Position numbers and translations under genes: made by a program. A stretch of 64,000 nucleotides of DNA from Phaeosaccion multiseriatum (lineage: Eukaryota > Protista > Ochrophyta, other classes): the NCBI GenBank assembly GCA_965112735.1, contig OZ218959.1:496001-560000 (forward strand), read 5' to 3'. Below are positions 8,297-54,700 of the stretch, in pieces. Every line of letters begins with the position of its first letter. Within the stretch, counting starts at the first letter, position 1. A model generated the notes under the pieces. That model made no database searches and was not told the origin of the DNA. It saw only the letters and a program-made list of their open reading frames with translations.

Positions 8297-9032
8297 GGGG
8301 GGGGGGGGGGGTAGAAACAGCAAAGAGAGCGCAGAGCGGGTCGGAGCCTTGCGATGACGTCGGCGGTTACACAAGGAAGGAGGGGGGGGCAGGGGAAGGA
8401 AGAAGGGAAAGGGGACACTTGGGTCCACGAAGGTCGTTACGGAAAATCGTTACTGACGCTTATAATGAGGCTCAGTCATACGCCTGGGACGGACGGGCAC
8501 GGGCAGCCGGGGAAGGCTGATGATGCGGCACGAGGAAGTAACTGCCACTTGCTCGGACGAATCGACGGAAGAACCCTGTATATATAACAGGAGGCGATGG
8601 GCCTACTGCTTTGTTGAAGAGGAGGGGGTGGCTAACGCCTCCTACACACTCTGTTCACTATACGCACAGTACGTCCATGGTAGTTAGTCGACCAACAGGC
8701 CCTTATGTAAAAATTGAGCTCAATTTGAGCTTGATGTGTTTCGTTCTACGCCCACACAAGTTGGTGCTTCACCTGGAGACGCCAGATGTCTTGTGTTTTG
8801 TATGTGTGTCTCTCTCTCTGGGTACCGTGCCGTGCCCCTGTTGCCTGACCCCCCTCAGCAGCTGTCCACCTCGTTCCAAGGTTGTCCTTTCTGCTTCTGC
8901 AACTCCCACTCCCGCTTCTGACCTGGATGGAAACGTACACTCTAGACTTCTTCGACCCCCAATGCCGAACCCATCGACCCATACGCCTACACAGACACAC
9001 GTCCAACGTCGCTGTACATTGTTTTAAATTAA

Positions 9033-9199
9033 TGAGACACTCTCGTACTCGATTTTTTTTTGAGACACTCCCGTACTACATTGTTTTAATGAGACACTCC
9101 CGTACTACATTGTTTTAATGAGACACTCCCGTACTACATTGTTTTAATGAGACACTCCCGTACTACATTGTTTTAATGAGACACTCCTGTACTACATTG
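9033..9199. repeat. 29-bp tandem minisatellite (TGAGACACTCCCGTACTACATTGTTTTAA): 4 full copies, 1 partial and 1 degenerate
   Basis: Units start at 9061, 9090, 9119, 9148 and 9177, with a degenerate unit at 9033. There are no spacers. The array abuts the stop codon of the Angel gene. Confidence 0.95.
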
Positions 9200-9802
9200 C
9201 TACATGAAAGCGAAGCGTCCCGCCAACAGCAAGTGGTCGCTGGGCTCCTTGACGGAGGGAAGCCCCCTATGCCTCGCCAGCTCGTGGAAGAGGGGCATTT
9301 CCACCACTCCCACGCAGCGCAGGGTGGGCTGTTGGGCGGCTTCACTGCCGCTGCTGCCTGCCCCTGTGTCTGTGTCTGTGTCTGTAGCTGTGTGTGAATC
9401 GCGACTTGAGTACCATATGTAGTCCACAGTCCCTCGGAAATGGTCGTGGAAGGTCGTGCAGGCGGGCTCGCCGGTGGTCGAGTGGTCCGGCTGCTGTGAA
9501 TACGCGCTCCTCAGCTGCAGCCCGTGCTGTATCCACTCCAGGGGGGCGGAGCATACCTCCTCAGTGCTCGTCCCACCCACCTTCCGCCACAGCACTGGTG
9601 GGAGCTGCTCTTCTTGGCCCTGCTCTTCTTGTCTTTGGTCTTGGCCCTGCATCACAAATGGCACGGGAGGGGGACTCGCAGTCCGAGGAGGAGTGGGGGG
9701 AAGAGGACAAGAGGAGGGGGGCGAGTACCGAACGTTCCACTTGGAGCAGCGCGGCTCGGGGTCCATCACCACGTGTCCGTTCCCTCCTCCTCCTCCTCCT
9801 CC

Positions 9803-9848
<46 letters not shown>

Positions 9849-11345
9849 GAATGACAATCCGGGCAGGCTTTCCAGAGGTGGTAGGCCTCACTCTCCACTC
9901 GTCCCCGTGCGGCTGTGGGGCTCCTCGCAGGAGCTCCGTCGCCACGAAACACGCCGTTACTCGAGCCGCTGCCCTGATGCCTCTCCAAAGGACTGCGCAC
10001 ATTCCTGCTGGCGCCCCAGGCGGTCCGCACCCGCTGCCCGGTGAGATGAGAGCGATGCAGTCCCGCCCCCCTCGCGCCCGCCCCCACGCGCAGCTCGCCG
10101 GTGCGTAGGAAAGAGTACAGCGCACTGCACGGGGTTAGATTGAAATCCCCGCAGAGAAGCACAGGCACGGGCGCGCCCCCTGCTGCTGCTGCTGCTGTAT
10201 CACCAACTGCTGCTGCTGCTGCTGCTGCTCCGGTCGAGGCCTGGCCCTGCACCTGCTCAATGGCGCTCAGCAGCAGCTGTAGCTGTGCCGTTTTCACGTC
10301 GCCCCTCTTGTTGTTGTACAGCAAGTGCGTGTTGGCCACCACCACCTTCTCTGCCGCCCCGGCCGTGCCCACGCCCACCGTCTCAAGCACACAGACTTGC
10401 CCCACGTTGGGCCGGTCCAAAGTGGCATGCCCCGCCCGAAAGAAAGGCACCTCAACCTCCCGCAGCACTCTAAAAGCTTTCTTCTTTACGAACATGGCGC
10501 ATCCGTCGAGCTTCTCGCCGCTTCTCTGCAGGAAGGTGGCCGTGTAGCCGTTCTGTCTCATACGGGGCTCGAAGAAGGAGTCGAAGTACTGGCGATCCAC
10601 TTCCTGGCAGCACACGACATCTGGGTCATAGCGTAGTAGCATGGCCAGCAGTCGCGCCTTGCGCACGCTCCAGTCGATCACGTCGCGTCGGTTAGCATAC
10701 GGCATGAACGAGAAGTCCAAGTTGCACTCGGCCAGCAAGTTGTAGGTCACTTGTCATAAAAATTTGTAATTGACAGCAACGAGGCAGCACGAAAGCAGCC
10801 GAGTTGAGTATATCGATAGTTAAGAGGCTTCGCAGGTAGAACAGTGCTGGAGGGTGACAAGGAGTTCATGTTTTCCCGGCGAGAAGGTGGGGCGAAGTCA
10901 ATGCACAGAGTTCAGTCAAAGAGGCCAACATGCCCTTACCTACGGTGAAGGTATCACCAGCCTCCCCGTGGTGCTGTGTGTACATGGTCCAAGGTCTATA
11001 ATCAGCAGGAGGGGCTGCCACCGCGGCTGCTTCCCGATCGGTCGCTCGGCGCTTTCTCTGCTGAGGGTTGTGGTGGTGTGCTCGTGCCCTCCCTCCGCCT
11101 TCCCCTCCCCCCCTTGCTCCTGTTCCAAATCCATGTCCTCTCCCGCGTCCTCTTTGTCCCCCTCCTCCGCGTCCTCTCTGTTCCCCTTCTCCACATCCTC
11201 CGCGTCCTCCGCGTCCTCGTCGTCCACCGCCTCCTCCGCCTCTTTGTCCGCCTCCTCCGCCTCTTTGTCCACCTCTCCCGCCCCTTCCTCTGCCTTCAAA
11301 CAAGGAGGTTTGAGCCCACGCGGAGGGGGGGGACTGTCTGGCCAT
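9200..11345 (-). CDS. Angel/CCR4-like EEP (exonuclease-endonuclease-phosphatase) family protein with an RGG-rich N-terminus; exons 11345-10940, 10749-9200
   Basis: Splicing gives DTFTV-V-TYNLLAE. Motifs: DVVCCQEVD, DGCAMF, LDRPNVGQV, VANTHLLYNNKRGDVK (Angel-subfamily-like), LCGDFN, TVDYIWY, PSDH. Confidence 0.9.
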
Positions 11346-11378
11346 TGGGGCCGATGAGCGATGATTCTTGATTTTATG

Positions 11379-11402
11379 TTACACCCTTAAGTGCCATCTA
11401 TG
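11379..11402 (+). repeat. Left arm of a perfect 24-bp inverted repeat (TTACACCCTTAAGTGCCATCTATG) flanking the recombinase gene
   Basis: Exact reverse complement of 14498-14521. Confidence 0.95.
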
Positions 11403-11749
11403 GTCGAGGTTGGGTGGGGGTGTTGGTGATTCGGATCGATATACAGTACTGTCCACGCCACATCCTCTCCTATTTGTTATAGCGCTCGTCTCTCTCTCAC
11501 CCTTTCTAAGGTGATTCGTCTTAAGTCAATATATGGTTTCCCTCCCGATCGTCCATTGTCCAGAGGAGGAAGAAGCAAAAGTGATGTTAATGTGTATCGC
11601 TTCTCCCTCGCGCCGGTGGGAGAGAACAATTGCAATGAAGTCTGTACAAGCACAAGAAAGTATTCTATAGCCTCCCAACTGTTCCCATCGTTGCCAGGGT
11701 CTTCAATCTTCAGGCATGACCAGCTCACTGGTCCTTCCCTCCGAGCTTC

Positions 11750-14063
11750 TCAGCGCGACGGGAGGGTAATGCCAGCATTGACTTGCTCCATCAACGCCAC
11801 GGCAGGCTCCACCTTCTTGGACAGCGTTCTGCGGTCGTAACTGCTCCTCTGCACCTGCACACTGTGCCCCATAAAGAGGGCCAGGGCCTCGAGCTGCTGC
11901 TCCGAGGCGTCGGAAGACTCGCGAATGTGCGTCACAATCATGTCTCGCAGGAGATGCGGGTTGGTCCGCTTTCCGGTGTATTTGTGGCACGTTCTGCCCA
12001 CAGATTGGTACACGGAATCCTGACTGAGGGGCTTCGCCGCGCGAACCTGGTGAGTGAGAGAGTGGGCGAGTGAGTGAGTGAGTGAGGGAGAGAGTGACTT
12101 GAGTGAGTGCGTGAGTGAGTGAGTGAGTGAGTGGGGTAAGTGAGTGCGTGAGTGAGTGAGTGAGTGAGTGAGTGAGGAAGGGTTGGAGTGACTTGACAAG
12201 TGGACGAGTGAGTGAGTGAGGGAGGGAGTGACCTGAGTGAGTGAGGGAGTGGGGTAAATGAGTGCGTGAGTGAGATGCGTGAGTGAGTGAGGGAGGGAGG
12301 TAACGAAGGAGTGACTTGAGTGAGTAAGTGAGTGAGTGGGGTAAGTGAGAGTGCGTCAGTGAGTGAGAGAGAGAGAAATTCAGATGAGTGTCAGCCACTG
12401 AGTGAGTGAGTCAGTGAGTGAGAGGAATTGAGGTGAGCGTCAGTGAGTGACTGAGTGCGTTGGTGAGCAGTAGCAGCCGCCGCCGCTCCCGCAGTGGTAC
12501 CATCACCACTCCCCCCGGGAAAGACCCACCTGTAGAAACAGATGCTTGTACGACCCGCCTCGCAACAAGAAAGGCCGCCATTGCTCAATGAACTCATCAA
12601 TCTCCGCTGTCATCAAAGCCGGCAGCTGCAGAGGAGGGCGTTCTCCGTAAGTCTTTCCAGTCTTGTAATCGTCTGGGGAGTGCTTTATACACCACTGCCC
12701 GTCATTCTTGACGAAAGAGGTGCCGATTTCCAGCTCACGAATGGTCCGTTGTCGATCAGGAACACTGCTAAAGAAGGCCACAATGAGGTACTTTTGAAAC
12801 GCCGTGGCGATGCCTCGTTGCCGGACTTCTTTGCGCTGTCTTTGACTTGCGGTGGTGGCGGGCTCCTCGGCAAGGTCAGCATCAATGAGGGCCCTGACCT
12901 CTTGCCGAGCCCTCTGCACCACGTCGAGATACTCCGGCCAGGACAGCCACTTGAGGGCCTCATCGCTGACTCGGGGTGCCACTGCCTGCCTGCGATTGGC
13001 CTCTCTGTGCAGCTTGCGCAGCTCCCGCAGCACGGGGATGTCGTCAAAGCTCTTGTCGTCTTCCGAGACACTCTCTTTCCGAAAGCGGAACTTGAGCATC
13101 TTGCCCAGGCCCCTCAAGAGATTCGCTTCGTACGACACGGAGATGTTCCGCGTGGATCGGAGCCATATCAAAAAGGCGAAGACGACCTCTGCAGACTGCT
13201 TCTCTTTGCTGGGGAAGATTTCATACAAAGACAGGTCCGCCTCGTCGAAGGGAGCTTGCCGCTCGGGGAGGAAATAGTTCCAGTACCAGCCGAGGAACAA
13301 CTTCGCGTGCCGAATGTAAGTGTTGGCTGTCGCAGCTCGGATGGGCGTTTCGCCTTGTGAGTCTGTCGAAGAGACTGTCATGAAGCGAAAGAAGTCCTGC
13401 AGCTCCCTCCCGATGACGGGGAAAACTTGCTCGTAGTTTCGAGGCAGCCCGTAGTCCAGACCACTCCGCCGTCTTGCCGATTCATCGACAACTACTGACT
13501 TGTACTGCGGTCGGAGCGAGCCATCCTCGTCGTCTACTGCTGCTGGTGGGGTTGGGTGTTGTGCAAAGTCCCTCTCGAGCGTGTGTTGTAGTGCCGCTCT
13601 CGTTTGGTGCGCTGTGAGGGGCGAAACCCCAAAGTCCTGAATCAGAAACGTCGACACCGCGGCACTGTTTTCCTCTGGGAAGTCCTTGGTGACTTGTCTC
13701 AGCGTCAGCGAACTGCTGTTCTCCCACAAGCCAGCATCGCCCAACTGAGAGATGATCTGGTCCTGTTGTGCCGCAGAATATCCCAGTTGCTCCATTGCAC
13801 GCAGGAACGGGTCCTTCGGACCACCCTTGTCTGCTGCAGCATAGGAACGCAATGGCGCTACCGCTGGTTTGAAGCAGTGGACTCCTGGTCCTCCATGACG
13901 AGGACCGCCCTGAAACACCAGAGCGCTGGAGGGTCGCGCCCAAGTGGTGGTGGTGGTGGTTGTGGCAGGGGTGTAGCTTCGCACGCCGAAAGGATTGCAC
14001 CAGGCCACACACCTGCCCACAAGAGAGAGCGTGGAGAAGCACAATTAGACCAACGAGAAGCAT
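11750..14063 (-). CDS. Tyrosine recombinase (phage-integrase fold) of ~575 aa with a putative bipartite plastid-targeting presequence; exons 14063-14013, 13909-12530, 12046-11750
   Basis: Catalytic residues appear in canonical order: R (VPDRQR, 12752-12754), K (DYKTGKTYG, 12662-12664), HxxR (PHLLR, 11956-11945), H (MGHS, 11864-11866), Y (SSYDRR, 11837-11839). Both introns are phase-0 GT-AG (14012-13910, 12529-12047). Exon 1 is less certain than exons 2-3. Confidence 0.85.
12047..12460. repeat. Degenerate (GAGT)n/(ACTC)n tetranucleotide array filling intron 2 of the recombinase gene
   Basis: GTGAGTGAGT is visibly reiterated. Confidence 0.9.
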
Positions 14064-14497
14064 ACTTTACACACCACATCCTTACTCACATTCTCACTCT
14101 CATGATCAAGCCTGTGCACCTGCTCGTCATCAGAGCAGCCCCCCATTCACAACCATGGGAACCGGCTTAAAAGGTGCTTGTCGACTGGAAGGAGGATCAG
14201 CTCGAGAATTGTTTAGATGGCTGGAGGAGGGAGTTGGAGGAGAGGGAGGACTTTACTACTTGGAGGAGAGGGACCAAAGAGGATCGGAGAGCAAGCCATT
14301 TGAGGATCGTATCACCAATGAGGGAAGGCAGGGGGTTACTTTTAGACAATCATGAGCGGGCTGTTTGCGTCATTCGGCGGCGTCTAGCCGTTGCGCTCCA
14401 GCGGGCTCGATATGATAGATCGATTCGCCATAGGATCCTGGCTGGCATAAACTCGGGGACTAAGTCCCGGGGCGGTGAGACATTACTTTTAGACAAT

Positions 14498-14521
14498 CAT
14501 AGATGGCACTTAAGGGTGTAA
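14498..14521 (+). repeat. Right arm of the 24-bp inverted repeat (CATAGATGGCACTTAAGGGTGTAA)
   Basis: Exact reverse complement of 11379-11402. It is surrounded by partial direct repeats (about 14336-14352 and 14529-14548). Confidence 0.95.
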
Positions 14522-14774
14522 TATATAACAATCATAAATGGCATTTAATTACTCAAATGCACCATGTGGCGCCCTTTGAGAGAGAGAGGGCCTATCTAAT
14601 CGCGGCGCTTGGTGGTTGGGTGTTTGGGGTCTCTGCTCGATATCCGATACCACCACGCACGTTTCCAGTCAAGAGCGTGGCCTTATCAAGGGCAATATCT
14701 GGGAGCAAGAGAGGAGGGGCTCTCCTAAGAGAAGCTATGTATATACTTACAGTTGTCATTGGAAGCGGTGCTTC

Positions 14775-15824
14775 TCAGTAAAGGTAGACGGCATACGCTG
14801 TTGCTACTGCAAAGATACTGTCGTTGACGAATGTCTCGGAGGCGTAGTTGTCCGTGTCACTGTCCCAGAAGCAGCGGCACCCCATACGCACACCCTCACC
14901 CCTCTGCTCTCCTACCAACACCTGCACTACATACTTGTACCTCGGGAGGCTCAGACCTGCGCGTGGGGTGCATAGGACGACATGGAGAATGGAGACAAGA
15001 AAGACAAGGCGCCGTTAAGGAAGCCCTTCCTCTCCCAGAAGGCAGCAGAAGGCAACAGAGTGCGAGAGGTATGGTGAGGCGCGCGGTGGGGGGGGGTGGG
15101 CTTTATCGGAGTGACTTCCTGCCTCATCCGAGTCCCCTTCATCCACCACGCGTCCCGTTAACGCAGCAAAGTAAGCGAACATCCCAACTCAATTGAGGTC
15201 CACTGCCTCAGCTCTCGAGGCCGTACACTCTCGCCAGAGCCTGTTTGGCCCCTGGCAGACAAGGCAACCCGCTACCTCTGGCAATGAGGCCTCCTTACAA
15301 TGCAAGCCAAGCTACCTGCATTTGCCACAGAGTAGACCCCAGTTCTGTATTTGTGTGAACAAAAGACACCTTCCAGCACCCGTGGTCTCACCTTTTAGCT
15401 TGTCTTTGATGTCGTCCGCTATCGTCTTGGTAATTTGAACGGCCTGCACGCGGTGAATGTGCGTGAGGATGCAGGGTACAGGCAGCAGGGGATAAATATG
15501 GATGGTGAGGGTAAGGGTGGAGGGTAGCCCGTCGCTGGAAAGGGCAAGGACAGGACCGAGCCGGGCTGGAGCAACGACGGCAGCCCCTTCCCCCCTTCCC
15601 GCGGGTGGGAGTTCGCACACCATGTTGAATGCCTTCTTCACTCCAATACGTGGGGGAAGTGGTGTTTCCATCTCACGTACCTGATCTGCATTGTAGCTTT
15701 GTCCTTGTAACTCCGTCTCCAGCACACCCTTGACGATCTCCCTCATGACATTGACGCTGGCCTTTTGCCGGTAGTTGGGCCGAAGCTGGTAGCTCGCCTC
15801 TCCCTCGAGACCGTCGCTAGTCAT
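14775..15824 (-). CDS. Tctex1-domain dynein light chain (Tctex2b/TCTEX1D2-like), 125 aa; exons 15824-15681, 15443-15392, 14956-14775
   Basis: Spliced product MTSDG..YQLRPNY..ETELQGQSYNADQ|AVQITKTIADDIKDKLK|GLSLPRYKYVVQVLVGEQRGEGVRMGCRCFWDSDTDNYASETFVNDSIFAVATAYAVYLY* has the typical Tctex signature. Exon lengths sum to 378 nt. Confidence 0.93.
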
Positions 15825-19432: not shown

Positions 19433-19498
19433 GCCGCCGAATCCCTCCTCCCTGCCACTGTTCCTCCAACCACACCGCACCCCGCACTCCCTCCCTCC
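19433..19498 (+). repeat. 66-bp dispersed repeat, copy 1
   Basis: 62/66 identical to the reverse complement of 43861-43926. Confidence 0.9.
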
Positions 19499-43860: not shown

Positions 43861-43926
43861 GGAGGGAGGGAGTGAGGGGTGGGGTGTGGTTGGAGGAACA
43901 ATGGTAGGGAGGAGGGATTCGGCGGC
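43861..43926 (-). repeat. 66-bp dispersed repeat, copy 2
   Basis: 62/66 identical to 19433-19498, in the opposite orientation. Confidence 0.9.
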
Positions 43927-48982: not shown

Positions 48983-51900
48983 ATGGTGTTCGCCCAGCAC
49001 CAGGGTGCGGCAGCGCCCACGCTGATCACGACCCTTCGTGCCGGAAGCTCGTGTCCGAGTGGACCCATAGCCTTGGGGGACGCTGGTGCCGCACGTCGCA
49101 GCCCCCCCAAGAGACAGCGCCAGGGCCATGGGAAGCACCAGAAGCCAGCACTACAGTGCCCTCCGGTCCAGCTCCGCTGGCAAGTCGAGCTGGGAAGCCG
49201 AGACAGATTCGTCTACCCTTCGCTCCATCTGGAGAGGGAATTTGTAGACGAGGAGGAGGAGGACCCTGGCGTTCCAGAGACGACAGTGCTGTCGCGACCC
49301 GGCCTGGGTCCCCGCTTCAGCTCGCGGCGCCTCCTGGCGGCGGACTCGACGGGGCTCGAGGTGATGCTCGAGCAAGTCGAGAGCGCAGGTGGGGGGATTG
49401 CGCTTCAGCAGGAGGGCACCATCGAGGAAGAGGGGGGGGTCGAAGAGGAGGGATCGAGCAGCGCCGATACGAAAAGGCGGGATGCGGGGGAGGGTGGGCG
49501 TGAGGAGGAGGGGCAAGGGCACGGGATACGAGCAGGGATGGAGGAGCTCATCGGCGCCGGTATGCGAGGGGAGGAGGTGGACGTCACTGCCTCTGCGAGG
49601 GGGGTGACCGGCGGTGGGAGTATAAACAGTCACTCGAGTTGCGACGGGTACGTGACGTGGGGAGGGTGCGCGAGACCGAACCCCTGTGTGCGGCTTCTCT
49701 CTCGTTGTCTTTTCATTTCTGTGCCAATCCATGCCTCCTTGGACTGACTGACTGATTCCCTGATTGATTCCCTGATTGATTCCCTGACTCATTCCCTGAC
49801 TCGCTTTGAATTGCACGACCCCGACACCACCCATTGACCCCATTCGCACCCCCTTCATTCACAGGGGTCGGTCGGGGCACAAGGTCGCGGCAGGAGGGGG
49901 GGCAGGGGGGGCTTTCTGGAAGCTGCAAGTGGTGGAAGGCGGCAGACGTTCTCTCGAGTGGGAGGAGTACATGAGCATTGCCGAAGGGGAGCTTGGGGAG
50001 CGCAGCAGACGGAGGGACGGGGCGCGCGGCAGGGGGGGCAGGGGGGGTGGGCAGACCAAGGAACAGCAGCATGGGGAGGGAGCGGGCTCCGGGGGCGGTG
50101 GGCTGAGTCACGCGAGGGACTTGGAGGAGGAAGGTGGGCACACGCGGGGCCTCCCGACTGTCGCACATGCAGCAGGCGGACGTACTTGCTTCCTGGCCTG
50201 TGTGGCGGTTTCCCCTGGAGCACGATGAATGAAAGTCTGTGCTTGAACAACCAACCGTTTGCTCTTTCTCTCCCCTCCTCTCCCTCTACCTCTCTTGCCC
50301 CTTTCTCTCTCTCTCCAGTCGCAGCCACCGAGTTGACCGACGCGCAGGGCAAGGGGGAGCAGCTGCTGAGGAGAAACATGAAGGCCATTGCCAAAGACGG
50401 TTTCGTTCGGTAAGATTGACTAGGCGCCGCAGGGAGGGAGGGAGGGAGGGAGGGAGGGAGCGGCATAGGAAAAGGTCTCCTAGCGGCTGGGTGAGGGGGG
50501 GGGGCAGTCCTACGCGGGGTGCGCCTACATTCTCTTGCCGTGGAAAGGGGAGAAGCAGCTCAACAGTCTCCCACCCCTCTATTTCTCTCTCTCCCTCTGT
50601 TGGTGCGCGTGTTCCTTCCTCCCCCCCTCTCTGCGCCCGTACGTGTGCGTATGTACTTCCCTCCCTCCCTCCCTGTATATGTATACGTGTGTATGTGTGT
50701 GTCCATCCCTCCCTGTCGCTCCCCAGGCCTCTGCTTGGGCACACGTTGTGTGTATCTGACAAAGTCGCAGACGCCCACGCAGCGCGGCAATTCAGAGAAA
50801 TGGTACGGGCGGAAAGCTGACGCTGTATGTCGATGCTGAATGTCGATGCTGATGTCGATGCTGAATGTCGACGATATCAATGTCTTCTCCCGCGCCTCCT
50901 CTCTACGGTCGCCCGTCCCCGTCGATCAACGCTCCCCCTCCTCCTACTCCTCTTTCTCCTCCTCGTTCTGCCTCCTCCCCCTCCTCCTTCTCCTCATGGT
51001 TCTGCCTCCTCCCCCTCATCCTTCTCCTCCTCCTCCTCCTCCTCCTCCTCCTCCTCCTCCTCCTCCTCCTCCTCCTCCTCCTCCTCGTCCTACCTCCTCC
51101 CCCTCCCGTCACGTTTGTTCTCAGGTACGGAGACGGACTACAAGGCCACACACCGCGGGGGGTGCCCTGTCTCTATCTCTGTCTCTGTCTTCGTCTCTGT
51201 CGCTCGGAGAGGGGTCTGACAAACCAGGAGAAGCGGCCACTGAAACTCGCACTGAATTTGGCACAAAGACTGAAACTCGCACTGGCCTTGGCGGAGACGG
51301 ACGCCCCGCCACCACGGGGAGCGCTTTCTCTCTCGGCAGAAGCCATGACGGGGACGGGAGCAGCGGAGAGCCGCCCACTTCGGCAATAGGCGCAGGTGTG
51401 TGCTGTGGTTTGGCGGTGGTCCTGTCTCGCTGTGACTTGCATTGCATCTGCCGGCCGTGGCCAGCAAGGGGAATAGCGCAACGCTATGCCTATATATGCC
51501 TCTCTCTACTCTTGTCTGCCCCAACGCCTCTACTCTACCCATACGCCTCTGTCTGCTCAGCTCTGCACACACTACTCTCCCCTCTGCTGCACTCTGCTGT
51601 ACCCTGCTCTGCTCTGCTCTGCTCTGCTCCTGCAGGCCCAGCAAAGAATCCCCCCCTCCTCTCCAGGGGCCCCTCTCTGGCGGGCACTCTCGCCAATCTC
51701 GGCAGCCATCTGGGGGAGGACCCCTACACGGGAGGTGAGGGGCTGCCAGTTGGGCATGGCGCAGGCGTATGGGCAGGCGCATGGGCAGGCGCATGGGCTG
51801 GGAGGGGGTGCAAAGTTAAGAGTAGAGGCATATGGGCTGGGGGGAGGCATAGTTAGAGTAGAGGTATATGGGCTGGGGGGGGAGGTATATAGTCAGAGTA

Positions 51901-54700
51901 GAGGCATATGGGGGGGGGGGCATAGTTAGAGTAGAGGCATATGGGCTGGGGGGGAGGTATATAGTTAGAGTAGAGGCATATGGGCTGGGGGGAGGCATAG
52001 AGTAGAGGCATATGGGCTGGGGGGAGGCATAGTTAGAGTAGAGGTATATGGGCTGGGGGGGAGGTATATAGTTAGAGTAGAGGCATATGGGGGGGGAGGC
52101 ATAGTTAGAGTAGAGGCATATGGGCTGGGGGGGAGGTATATAGTTAGAGTAGAGGCATGTGGGCTGGGGGGAGGCATAGTTAGAGTAGAGGTATATGGGC
52201 TGGGGGGAGGCATAGTTAAAGTAGAGGCATATGGGCTGGGGGGAGGCATAGTTAAAGTAGAGGCATATGGGCTGGGGGGGAGGCATAGTTAGAGTAGAGG
52301 TATATGGGCTGGGGGGAGGCGTATGGGCAAGGCATACGGGTAGGCATGGGGGGCTGGAGGCAGGAGGCGCTGGGGAAGAACTGCACAATGGTGTTGCTAT
52401 CACTGCGTCGTAAAGCCTTGTCCACCCATCTCCTTCCATTCCCTCCCCTCCCCTCCTAACTTGTGCTGTGTCTTGTGCGGTTGCTGGGCGAGAGCAGTCC
52501 AGCAGGAGGGCACGGGGGAGCAGCCCAGGGGAGGAAGCGGGGCCATTGTGTTTCTGCAAGAAGCGTGGGGGGGGGGCCACCAGCCAGACGCAGCAGCAGC
52601 CGCCGCTAGGGAGGGCCCTCCGAAGGCTGCTGCTGATGATGCTCCTCCTGGGGACGGACAAGAGGGTGAGACTTGTTTGGAAGGGGAGCACGGGCAGGAG
52701 CGGTCTGCAAGAAACTTGTCCAAGGCGCAGAGTAACGCCCCGGGCAAGCAAAGGTACGCGAGGGTCTGACGAGGGGGAGGGAAGAGAAGACGACGTGGCT
52801 CTCTGCTGTTCCGGTCTGCAAGGAAGGCCTTCTCCTGTTCCTTCTCATGGCCGGCGGGGTTTCGCTCTACTGTCTCCCGACGGGTGTGTCTCGTGCCCCT
52901 TGCTCCAGTCTCCCGCTCGTGTCCCCTTGCTCTCATCTCTCCCTCTACTCTCTCACTCTGCTGTCTCGCTTCGCTTGCGCCTTTCCTGCCGTGTGCCCGC
53001 TACCTCTCTACCCTACCCTCTTCTCGTGCCCCTCCTCCTCTGTCCCCCCGTGTGCATCCCCCTCATGCAGGTACAAGGTCTTCCGTTACGGTGACGACAC
53101 CGGAGTGCTCCGAGCCAAGGCAGCACTGCGCTACTTAGAGACGGCATCGCACAAGGTCAAGAGAAGAGCGCACTTCGACAGAGCGCAGAGGCAGCAAAAC
53201 TCAATGAGGCAGCAGCAGCAGCGCCTGCAGGTCCGTGCGGGTGTGGGTGCGTACGTGCGTGCGTGTATGCGTGTATATCGTGTGTGCATGTGTGCGTGCG
53301 TGTATGCTTTTATGTGCGTGTGCGTGTGTGTGTGTGCGTGCGTGCGTGCGTGGCCAAGCCCGATCCCACGTCCAGGACTCGACCGTCACTGCATGACCTC
53401 ACGCCTCGCCTATCCTTGCGCGGGACTTGCCCTCGCAGACCATCGTCTCTGACCTTTGCTTGTCCCCTCTCTCCCTCTCTACCTCCCTACCTCTCCGGCC
53501 CTCCCTCTCTCTGCGCGGTTCAGCTGCAGAGGAAGCGTCACAAAGAAGCCCTGGCTCGAGCCCTTCTCCCCTCCTCCCCGCGCACCGAAGGTAATTCATT
53601 CATTCATGCACTTCTGAGCAAGCTTGGGGGGTTGTGTTGGGCCTCCATCAGGTGACATGCACTGATCCTCGATCGATCCTCGCAATGTTCAATGTTCGGT
53701 TGGCCTCACTTTTGTTGTTCCTCCCTCTTTCTCACTTGTGTAACCGTTGTACCCTCTGCTTGTCCTTGCTCGCTTCTATCACGGACAGCCCGCCGCCTCT
53801 TCAACGAGTGCAAAGAGGGCACGGGGAGAGAGCTTGCACCTGACAGGGATCACAATGCGAACATCTATAAAGGCCTCCTCTGCTCGCAGGGGGGCAGGGG
53901 CAGGGGCAGCGGGGTGGGGGGGCGGCAAGGGGGGGAGGGAGGGAGGGAAGGGGGGAGGGGCGGCAGGGGGGGCAGGGGGGCGGGGGCCATGCTGCGCTTC
54001 AAGAGGGCCAACACCTTCTCACACGTGCACGCACACTCGAGGGGGGGTGCGAGGGGTGCGCTGGGTACTGAGGTGATCGAGGAGGGAAGTGGCAGCGACG
54101 GGGAGGGGGAGGGGGATGGGGAGGGGCGTCTCGCAGAGACGGAGCTGAGAGGCGGAGCAACACTAGCAACGAGACAGGAAGGCACGCACACAGGGAGGGG
54201 GGCGAGGGGAGCAAGGGGAGCGAGGGGAAGGCCACGCACGGCGCCGGGTAGACACACGCGACACACAAGCGCACCTCACTTCGAGGAGGTGCAGCGGTTG
54301 ACATTTGGGAGGGGGGAAGGAGGAGCAGAGGCGGGCCAAAGAGGAGGAGTCCAGTCGGTGAGTGGGAGGAGGGCGGTGGAGGGGGTAGGGTATGGTAGGG
54401 TATAGCTACATACACATGCACACACAGGTAGACACAGTAGTAGACCCACAGACACACACATTTACACACAGACGTACAGAGACACACACAGAAGTGCACG
54501 CACACACGCGTACACACACATACAACACGCACACACACACACGCGCGCGCGTCCACACACATACAACATACACACACACGCGCGCGCACAAGCAGCTTCG
54601 TCGCCTGCCTACCTCGCCAGCCACTCAGCCACTCAGTTCTCTTACTGCTGCCTCGCCTCCCCCCCCTCCCCCGTCCCCTTTTCCTCCTCCTTCCCTACCG

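Follow-up and report, generated by a model that had tools for sequence, protein, structure and literature searches.

In the window (the whole 64-kb stretch of DNA that was analysed), two complete genes, encoding the CCR4-like protein Angel and Tctex-1, lie on either side of a 3.1-kb segment that is bracketed by two arms of an inverted repeat and contains a single gene, a tyrosine recombinase (YR) on the minus strand (Table 1). The Angel start codon was called from an RPWTMY motif that the Ascophyllum homologue has in common with it at a similar offset. Directly after the Angel stop codon is a 29-bp tandem repeat of 5.9 copies (9029-9199).

Table 1. Genes and repeat elements in and around the 3.1-kb segment (window coordinates)
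Feature	Position	Strand	Description
Angel (CCR4-like)	9200..11345	-	probable ATG at 11345, 33 bp outside left arm
AT-rich outward extension	11372..11378	+	5/7 complementary to 14522-14528
Left arm	11379..11402	+	T, TA (11380-11381), then 21-bp CACCC.. terminal repeat (11382-11402)
Degenerate inner copy of arm	11520..11537	+	134 bp inside left end
YR last exon	11750..12046	-	HLLR, MGH and catalytic Tyr; stop 11750-11752
YR intron	12047..12529	-	phase-0 GT-AG; GTGA/ACTC microsatellite as in other host introns
YR main exon	12530..14011 (5' boundary uncertain)	-	transit-peptide-like stretch, helical N-domain, core-binding domain, catalytic R and K
Signal-peptide-like frame	14004..14063	-	ATG 14063 plus 20 codons, one frame off main ORF
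Inner copy, exact 18-bp direct repeat	14336..14353	+	147 bp from partner
Outer copy, exact 18-bp direct repeat	14483..14500	+	3-nt overlap with right arm
Right arm	14498..14521	-	21-bp repeat (14498-14518), TA (14519-14520), A (14521)
Near-copy outside right arm	14528..14548	+	19/21 direct match to 14493-14513; unexplained
Tctex-1	14775..15824	-	stop ~253 bp outside right arm

The right arm is the exact reverse complement of the 24-mer of the left arm, and no longer exact inverted repeat of complex sequence occurs in the 64-kb window. When up to three mismatches are allowed, the two arms are still the only copies in the window (shuffle expectation, 0.00); they lie 3.1 kb apart and face each other. 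This agrees with the first-pass annotation, made from the sequence alone, which had reported a perfect 24-bp inverted repeat around the recombinase gene alone, not of low complexity and with no third full copy. It had also read the repeat as TA + 21-bp CACCC..GGGTG (CAC..GTG ends) + TA, which is correct, though the 2-bp TA is the only direct repeat flanking the arms, flanks of 3 to 9 nt being different. The similarity that it saw reaching outward is real as well: pairing continues to 29 of 31 positions, and the homology ends symmetrically at one TA-flanked boundary. The outward extension on the left would be consistent with a near-palindromic AT-rich target site, and the right end ranks among the most AT-rich 60-mers of the 64-kb window; in AT-rich DNA, a 2-bp TA match carries little weight. 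Another dispersed complex repeat in the window, 66 bp long and 94% identical, is also inverted (19433-19498 and 43861-43926), its copies 24 kb apart.

The first-pass annotation had overlooked the near-copy outside the right arm, and also further repeats that lie ~135-150 bp inside each end of the segment, those on the left and right not being alike. The degenerate inner copy on the left has a local score of 12, compared with a shuffle mean of 8.1 (p~0.01). On the right is the exact 18-bp direct repeat (14336 and 14483), while the longest such repeat in shuffles is 13. The 129 bp separating its two copies (14354-14482) have no Rfam match and no unusual folding, and may be a separate small insertion with its own long target duplication. 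The right end gave no match in plasmids or phages, no Rfam match and no unusual folding.

In public collections, which probably contain little or none of the host genome, the metagenome scan for the repeat returned one match, which agrees with the left arm at 25/26 positions and lies within a phage ORF of 1420 aa (L006, 2994-3019); being at chance level, it was rejected as a true copy. Viral contigs gave no match at 17 nt and 38 single matches at 15 nt, and prokaryotic genomes gave two single matches; all of these were judged to be chance, as was the one AT-rich giant-virus match to the 18-bp repeat, which had no flanking similarity. No YR gene was found beside any of these public matches.

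The catalytic set of the enclosed gene, R-K-HxxR-H-Y, is intact when read exon by exon. Homology searches and fold prediction used the window exons singly. For the main exon (exon A only), the best fold matches were XerH and Cre (Foldseek probability 0.9-0.98, E 0.07-0.2). Pfam and PDB sequence searches with the window exons found no YR match; four homologues match the XerC HMM weakly (E 7e-4 to 2.5e-6, far below the cut-off), and a cyanobacterial relative matches PF00589. A single-sequence fold of the homologue P0116 reached a pLDDT of 38. The catalytic residues, the predicted fold and the profile matches to relatives identify the gene as a member of the tyrosine recombinase superfamily. It has diverged in the manner of a housekeeping gene under purifying selection.

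The 5' end can be read in more than one way. The frame that opens at ATG 14063 has a hydropathy of 2.75 (family range, 1.2-3.3), and its join to the main ORF is ambiguous: several short introns could link its codons in frame with the signal kept, while a GT-AG intron ending at 14012 is an alternative that gives a YR start without a signal peptide. Positions 14004-14063 are thus possibly a signal-coding exon, or possibly themselves the 3' end of an intron. Across 14004-14130, where the off-by-one signal-like frame overlaps a good intron 3' end, the ambiguity could stem from an error in the reads, from alternative splicing or from lost targeting.

Relatives of the long exon are numerous: with clustering at 50% there are 559 (best 65% identity, E 2e-128), and the 90% collection has 110. 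P0145, P0152, P0151 and P0210 are among the rows that show the spread of the family. Named members come from diatoms (Fragilaria, Thalassionema, Pseudo-nitzschia, a Bacillariaceae MAG, Dactyliosolen and Minutocellus), chrysophytes (Mallomonas, Ochromonadaceae), an oomycete, an amoebozoan and a green alga, and the most distant relatives are cyanobacterial integrases. Family proteins are ~550-750 aa long, with an extra N-terminal helical domain. N-termini were classified by eye from crude hydropathy scores rather than by SignalP; on that basis, all 34 ochrophyte-type members examined start with a hydrophobic stretch resembling a signal, after which F or W often comes, a bipartite plastid-targeting pattern. 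W after the signal stretch is part of this pattern. So is F at +1 (PMC4329603). The oomycete, amoebozoan and green-algal members start instead with basic, non-hydrophobic sequence resembling an organelle presequence. The starts of the ochrophyte YRs are apparently of plastid type, and those of the oomycete and amoebozoan ones apparently mitochondrial-like. Since such N-termini would send the proteins to plastids or mitochondria, the homologues should be kept away from nuclear DNA. We found no paper describing this family in the literature; it appears to be an undescribed group of nucleus-encoded, organelle-targeted YRs with cyanobacterial relatives.

At every homologous locus read, the YR gene is single and lies amid unrelated housekeeping-type neighbors; neither Angel nor Tctex is beside it at any of them. 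Synteny with L004 seemed to be indicated by a kinase, but no meaningful alignment was obtained between the two kinases, and the idea was dropped. Since the longest bracketing exact inverted repeat at 11 homologous loci is 9-11 nt, against 24 here, the repeat is not a trait of the YR family. Three other neighborhoods have features of their own. In L001 (9123-10712), a eukaryotic contig, ATP synthase subunit a and ATPase-gene-1 domains lie close to the YR gene; such domains are normally organellar or bacterial. L009 and L010 differ by ~435 bp and one extra called ORF just downstream of YR in one assembly (L010, 10421-10747). In L016 (1173-8509), two ferredoxin-dependent bilin reductases and a phytoene/squalene synthase flank the YR homologue, a group of genes with likely plastid functions.

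These observations bear on the proposal of the first-pass annotation that the segment is a self-mobilizing or invertible recombinase module. Flp/FRT, Cre/loxP and FimB/FimE are invertible switches in which a YR acts on inverted sites around or near its gene. On such a model, the YR would have lost its signal peptide, would now be nuclear, and would invert or excise its own cassette, possibly flipping the Angel promoter. The catalytic residues are intact, the perfect repeat encloses YR alone, the Angel ATG is 33 bp away from the left arm, and splicing of the intron that ends at 14012 would supply a start without the signal peptide. We consider this distinctly unlikely. YR sites typically consist of two inverted 11-13 bp elements around a 6-8 bp spacer (PMC3212892), and the arms have no such dyad: the best candidates, 6/11 and 8/11, were equalled by 454/500 and 213/500 shuffles, respectively. 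Several splice models retain the signal peptide from ATG 14063, the divergence is housekeeping-like, and scans of viral and prokaryotic contigs confirmed no relatives of the YR. The absence of a dyad is not absolute, as FimS-type sites can be less symmetric. Because the arms lack a dyad, the homologues lack the sites and the family is organelle-bound, the YR is unlikely to act on the arms, and a self-mobilizing recombinase is unlikely; the small probability left to the switch is kept because the 5' end of the gene allows a start without the signal. It is quite improbable that a diatom plastid YR has turned nuclear here, its signal peptide lost or open to removal by splicing, and acts on the 24-bp repeats around its gene, whether as a self-inverting Angel promoter switch or as a minimal YR-plus-TIR mobile element. 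The transposon-end part of the earlier interpretation stands better (TA, CAC..GTG ends, inner repeats) than the link it drew between recombinase and repeat, against which the distant orthologues speak: their loci have no bracketing repeats, an outcome that the first-pass annotation had itself named as refuting.

The comparison with the Flp, Cre and Fim switches accordingly yields a likeness in YR fold (XerH, Cre) and inverted sites, with differences in the missing 11-13 bp dyad and in the homologues without sites. Other YR elements fit no better. In Cryptons, TIRs are absent and the termini are direct repeats of 4-6 bp (PMC3212892). The Cryptons and CryptonS of oomycetes and diatoms resemble the window gene in being intron-containing YR genes of a stramenopile nucleus (PMC3212892), but TIRs are present here and this YR has cyanobacterial relatives and organelle-targeting starts. 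The window YR has no DUF3504 or GCR1_C Pfam match, Cryptons having been compared by description only, and the CryptonS terminus TATGG is found at the left arm only, with no direct-repeat partner. Starships likewise have a YR and occasional TIRs (PMC11162782), but there is no DUF3435 match, the segment is 3.1 kb rather than tens to hundreds of kb, and it has no other cargo. In contrast to Tec-type elements of ciliates, no DDE transposase is encoded alongside the YR. By its ends and content, the segment is not a Crypton, Starship or Tec element. Plastid TyrC/XerC of Heterosigma and some diatoms is similar in being a YR presumed to act on plastid DNA (PMC2410131, PMC2873285, PMC9235467); TyrC is ~300 aa and plastid-encoded, whereas the family described here is nucleus-encoded, with longer proteins and the extra N-terminal domain.

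The YR gene itself appears to have come from a diatom. Three trees place the window exon together with P0116, P0118 and P0003 among the diatoms, and there inside the pennates, in a clade that also holds Pseudo-nitzschia and the Bacillariaceae MAG (SH-aLRT 98/97/99, mixture model). P0116, P0118 and P0003 were called diatoms because of where they fall in the tree and because their loci are intronless, with 45-47% GC; tetranucleotide profiles were dropped for taxon assignment as too noisy. An earlier AU test gave p=0.0016 for a group picked after the tree was seen. Because five long-branch rows shifted between FastTree and IQ-TREE, the nesting test was rerun without them, and a constraint holding the named diatoms together to the exclusion of the window exon was rejected (AU p=0.0014). 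The host was placed with two genes, ABCF and Angel. For an ABCF exon, identity is 65% with brown algae and 54-57% with diatoms, and the exon branches outside both the diatom clade (99) and the diatom-plus-bolidophyte clade (96); the best match of its Angel is a brown alga. Judged by these sequences, and by an RPB1 gene that spans at least 9 kb with many introns, the host is not a diatom.

We infer that the YR gene was transferred from a pennate diatom into another ochrophyte class, although its diatom-like position may be due instead to loss of other copies. Four-fold sites are 24-30% identical to the nearest relative, which is background, at an amino-acid identity of 60-79%. GC3 is 0.69-0.78 in YR, 0.42-0.64 in the diatom homologues and 0.76-0.87 in most host genes. 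The YR intron has no counterpart at the equivalent position in the homologous loci read. Since four-fold sites are saturated, GC3 has drifted toward the host and a host-style intron has been gained, the transfer would be old, or the donor unsampled. An assembly artefact or contaminating diatom sequence, to which the diatom-like gene and a possible 1-nt frame discrepancy near 14006 might point, is very improbable given the host-type microsatellite intron, a GC content of 57-60%, codon use nearer to that of the host than to that of the diatom homologues, and the complete flanking genes.

An old gene with perfect ends implies that the ends are recent or maintained. We put a probability of roughly 0.4 on the segment being a non-autonomous, Pack-type TIR DNA transposon that carries the YR passively. 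The transposase, a DDE enzyme of IS630-Tc1-mariner or CACTA-like type encoded at another locus, would have moved the segment in trans to an AT-rich TA site just upstream of the Angel start codon. The gene would have been acquired from the diatom long before, so that the perfect ends would mark a later move and not necessarily the vehicle of the transfer. The passenger would most likely be imported into the plastid and act on plastid DNA, putatively in XerC/D-like resolution of dimers or repeat isomers. Evidence for a Pack-type element comes from the TA at both sides, the 21-bp CAC..GTG ends, the AT-rich near-palindromic site, the inner repeats at both ends, the lack of a transposase or other domain in the inner flanks, the absence of repeats from homologous loci and the absence of a dyad core in the arms. 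Against it, the 64-kb window shows neither a second copy nor an empty site nor a cognate transposase. The inner repeats are unlike at the two ends, the TA match is only 2 bp, and neither the extra motif copy beyond the right arm nor the weak similarity that continues outward would be expected of a clean insertion. Such elements also carry gene fragments more often than whole genes (PMC11162782).

Among known elements, Pack-MULE, Pack-CACTA and ITm-derived elements share with the segment short TIRs, inner repeats, a host-type gene, no transposase and a length below 10 kb (PMC11162782); the segment differs from Pack elements in its full-length, apparently functional foreign (diatom) recombinase and its target duplication of only 2 bp. 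ITm elements bear TIRs and duplicate TA, and like IS630-Tc1-mariner elements the segment has TA on both sides, an AT-rich site and exact TIRs, whose 21 bp are near the 23-57 bp of most Sailor TIRs (PMC8533490). Unlike in IS630-Tc1-mariner, there is no DDE transposase inside, and the inner repeats differ between the ends. The segment shows CACCC ends and inner repeats, but its ends are not CACTA/CACTG, and a 3-bp duplication is lacking (TTA versus TAA, of which 2 bp agree). CACTA/CMC elements have CAC termini with subterminal repeats.

The position of the motif copies allows another origin, in which the gene stayed in place and the repeat is the scar of an inversion: at a staggered break, or by template switching, 24-31 bp of right-hand sequence would have been copied, inverted, to the left breakpoint. 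The motif seems to belong to the right side, occurring at 14336, 14483/14493 and 14528, the last outside the arm. Un-flipping the segment would put YR and Angel head to head and YR and Tctex tail to tail, and would replace the 33 bp in front of Angel by a normal upstream region. Staggered breaks are a mechanism that produces inverted duplications at breakpoints. Such duplications are on record for Drosophila (PMC1885836). A scar would leave the TA and the CAC..GTG ends unaccounted for, as well as the older degenerate copy inside the left end, and we regard it as tenable though rather unlikely. It is unlikely that two independent short insertions or dispersed-repeat relics, such as solo MITE ends or a regulatory motif, flank the gene by chance. 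The window does contain another complex inverted pair (19433/43861), and the stretch of 129 bp flanked by the 18-bp repeats might have been inserted separately, with a duplication of its own, but chance would not lead one to expect homology ending symmetrically at a TA-flanked boundary, or just two full copies, 3.1 kb apart and facing. Overall, the most likely readings of the segment are a Pack-type TIR element and an inversion scar, the YR inside being diatom-derived and probably plastid-bound.

The YR family and the apparent gene transfer hold whichever reading of the repeat is right. The enzyme for resolution of organelle chromosomes is a question that has been raised for plastid TyrC (PMC2410131), and this widespread nucleus-encoded family would be a direct candidate for resolving or isomerizing such chromosomes. 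The copy in the window looks like a eukaryote-to-eukaryote transfer, from a pennate diatom to another ochrophyte class. If the ends are transposon ends, a short TIR element has moved a whole functional gene in this alga; if nuclear self-action were true, the locus would amount to a phase-variation switch in a eukaryotic chromosome, or to a new class of transposon derived from an organelle housekeeping enzyme. Elsewhere in the window, a Myb ORF contains a 177-bp tandem duplication (80%, 2476-2843), and an array with a unit of ~36 bp occupies 51810-52340.
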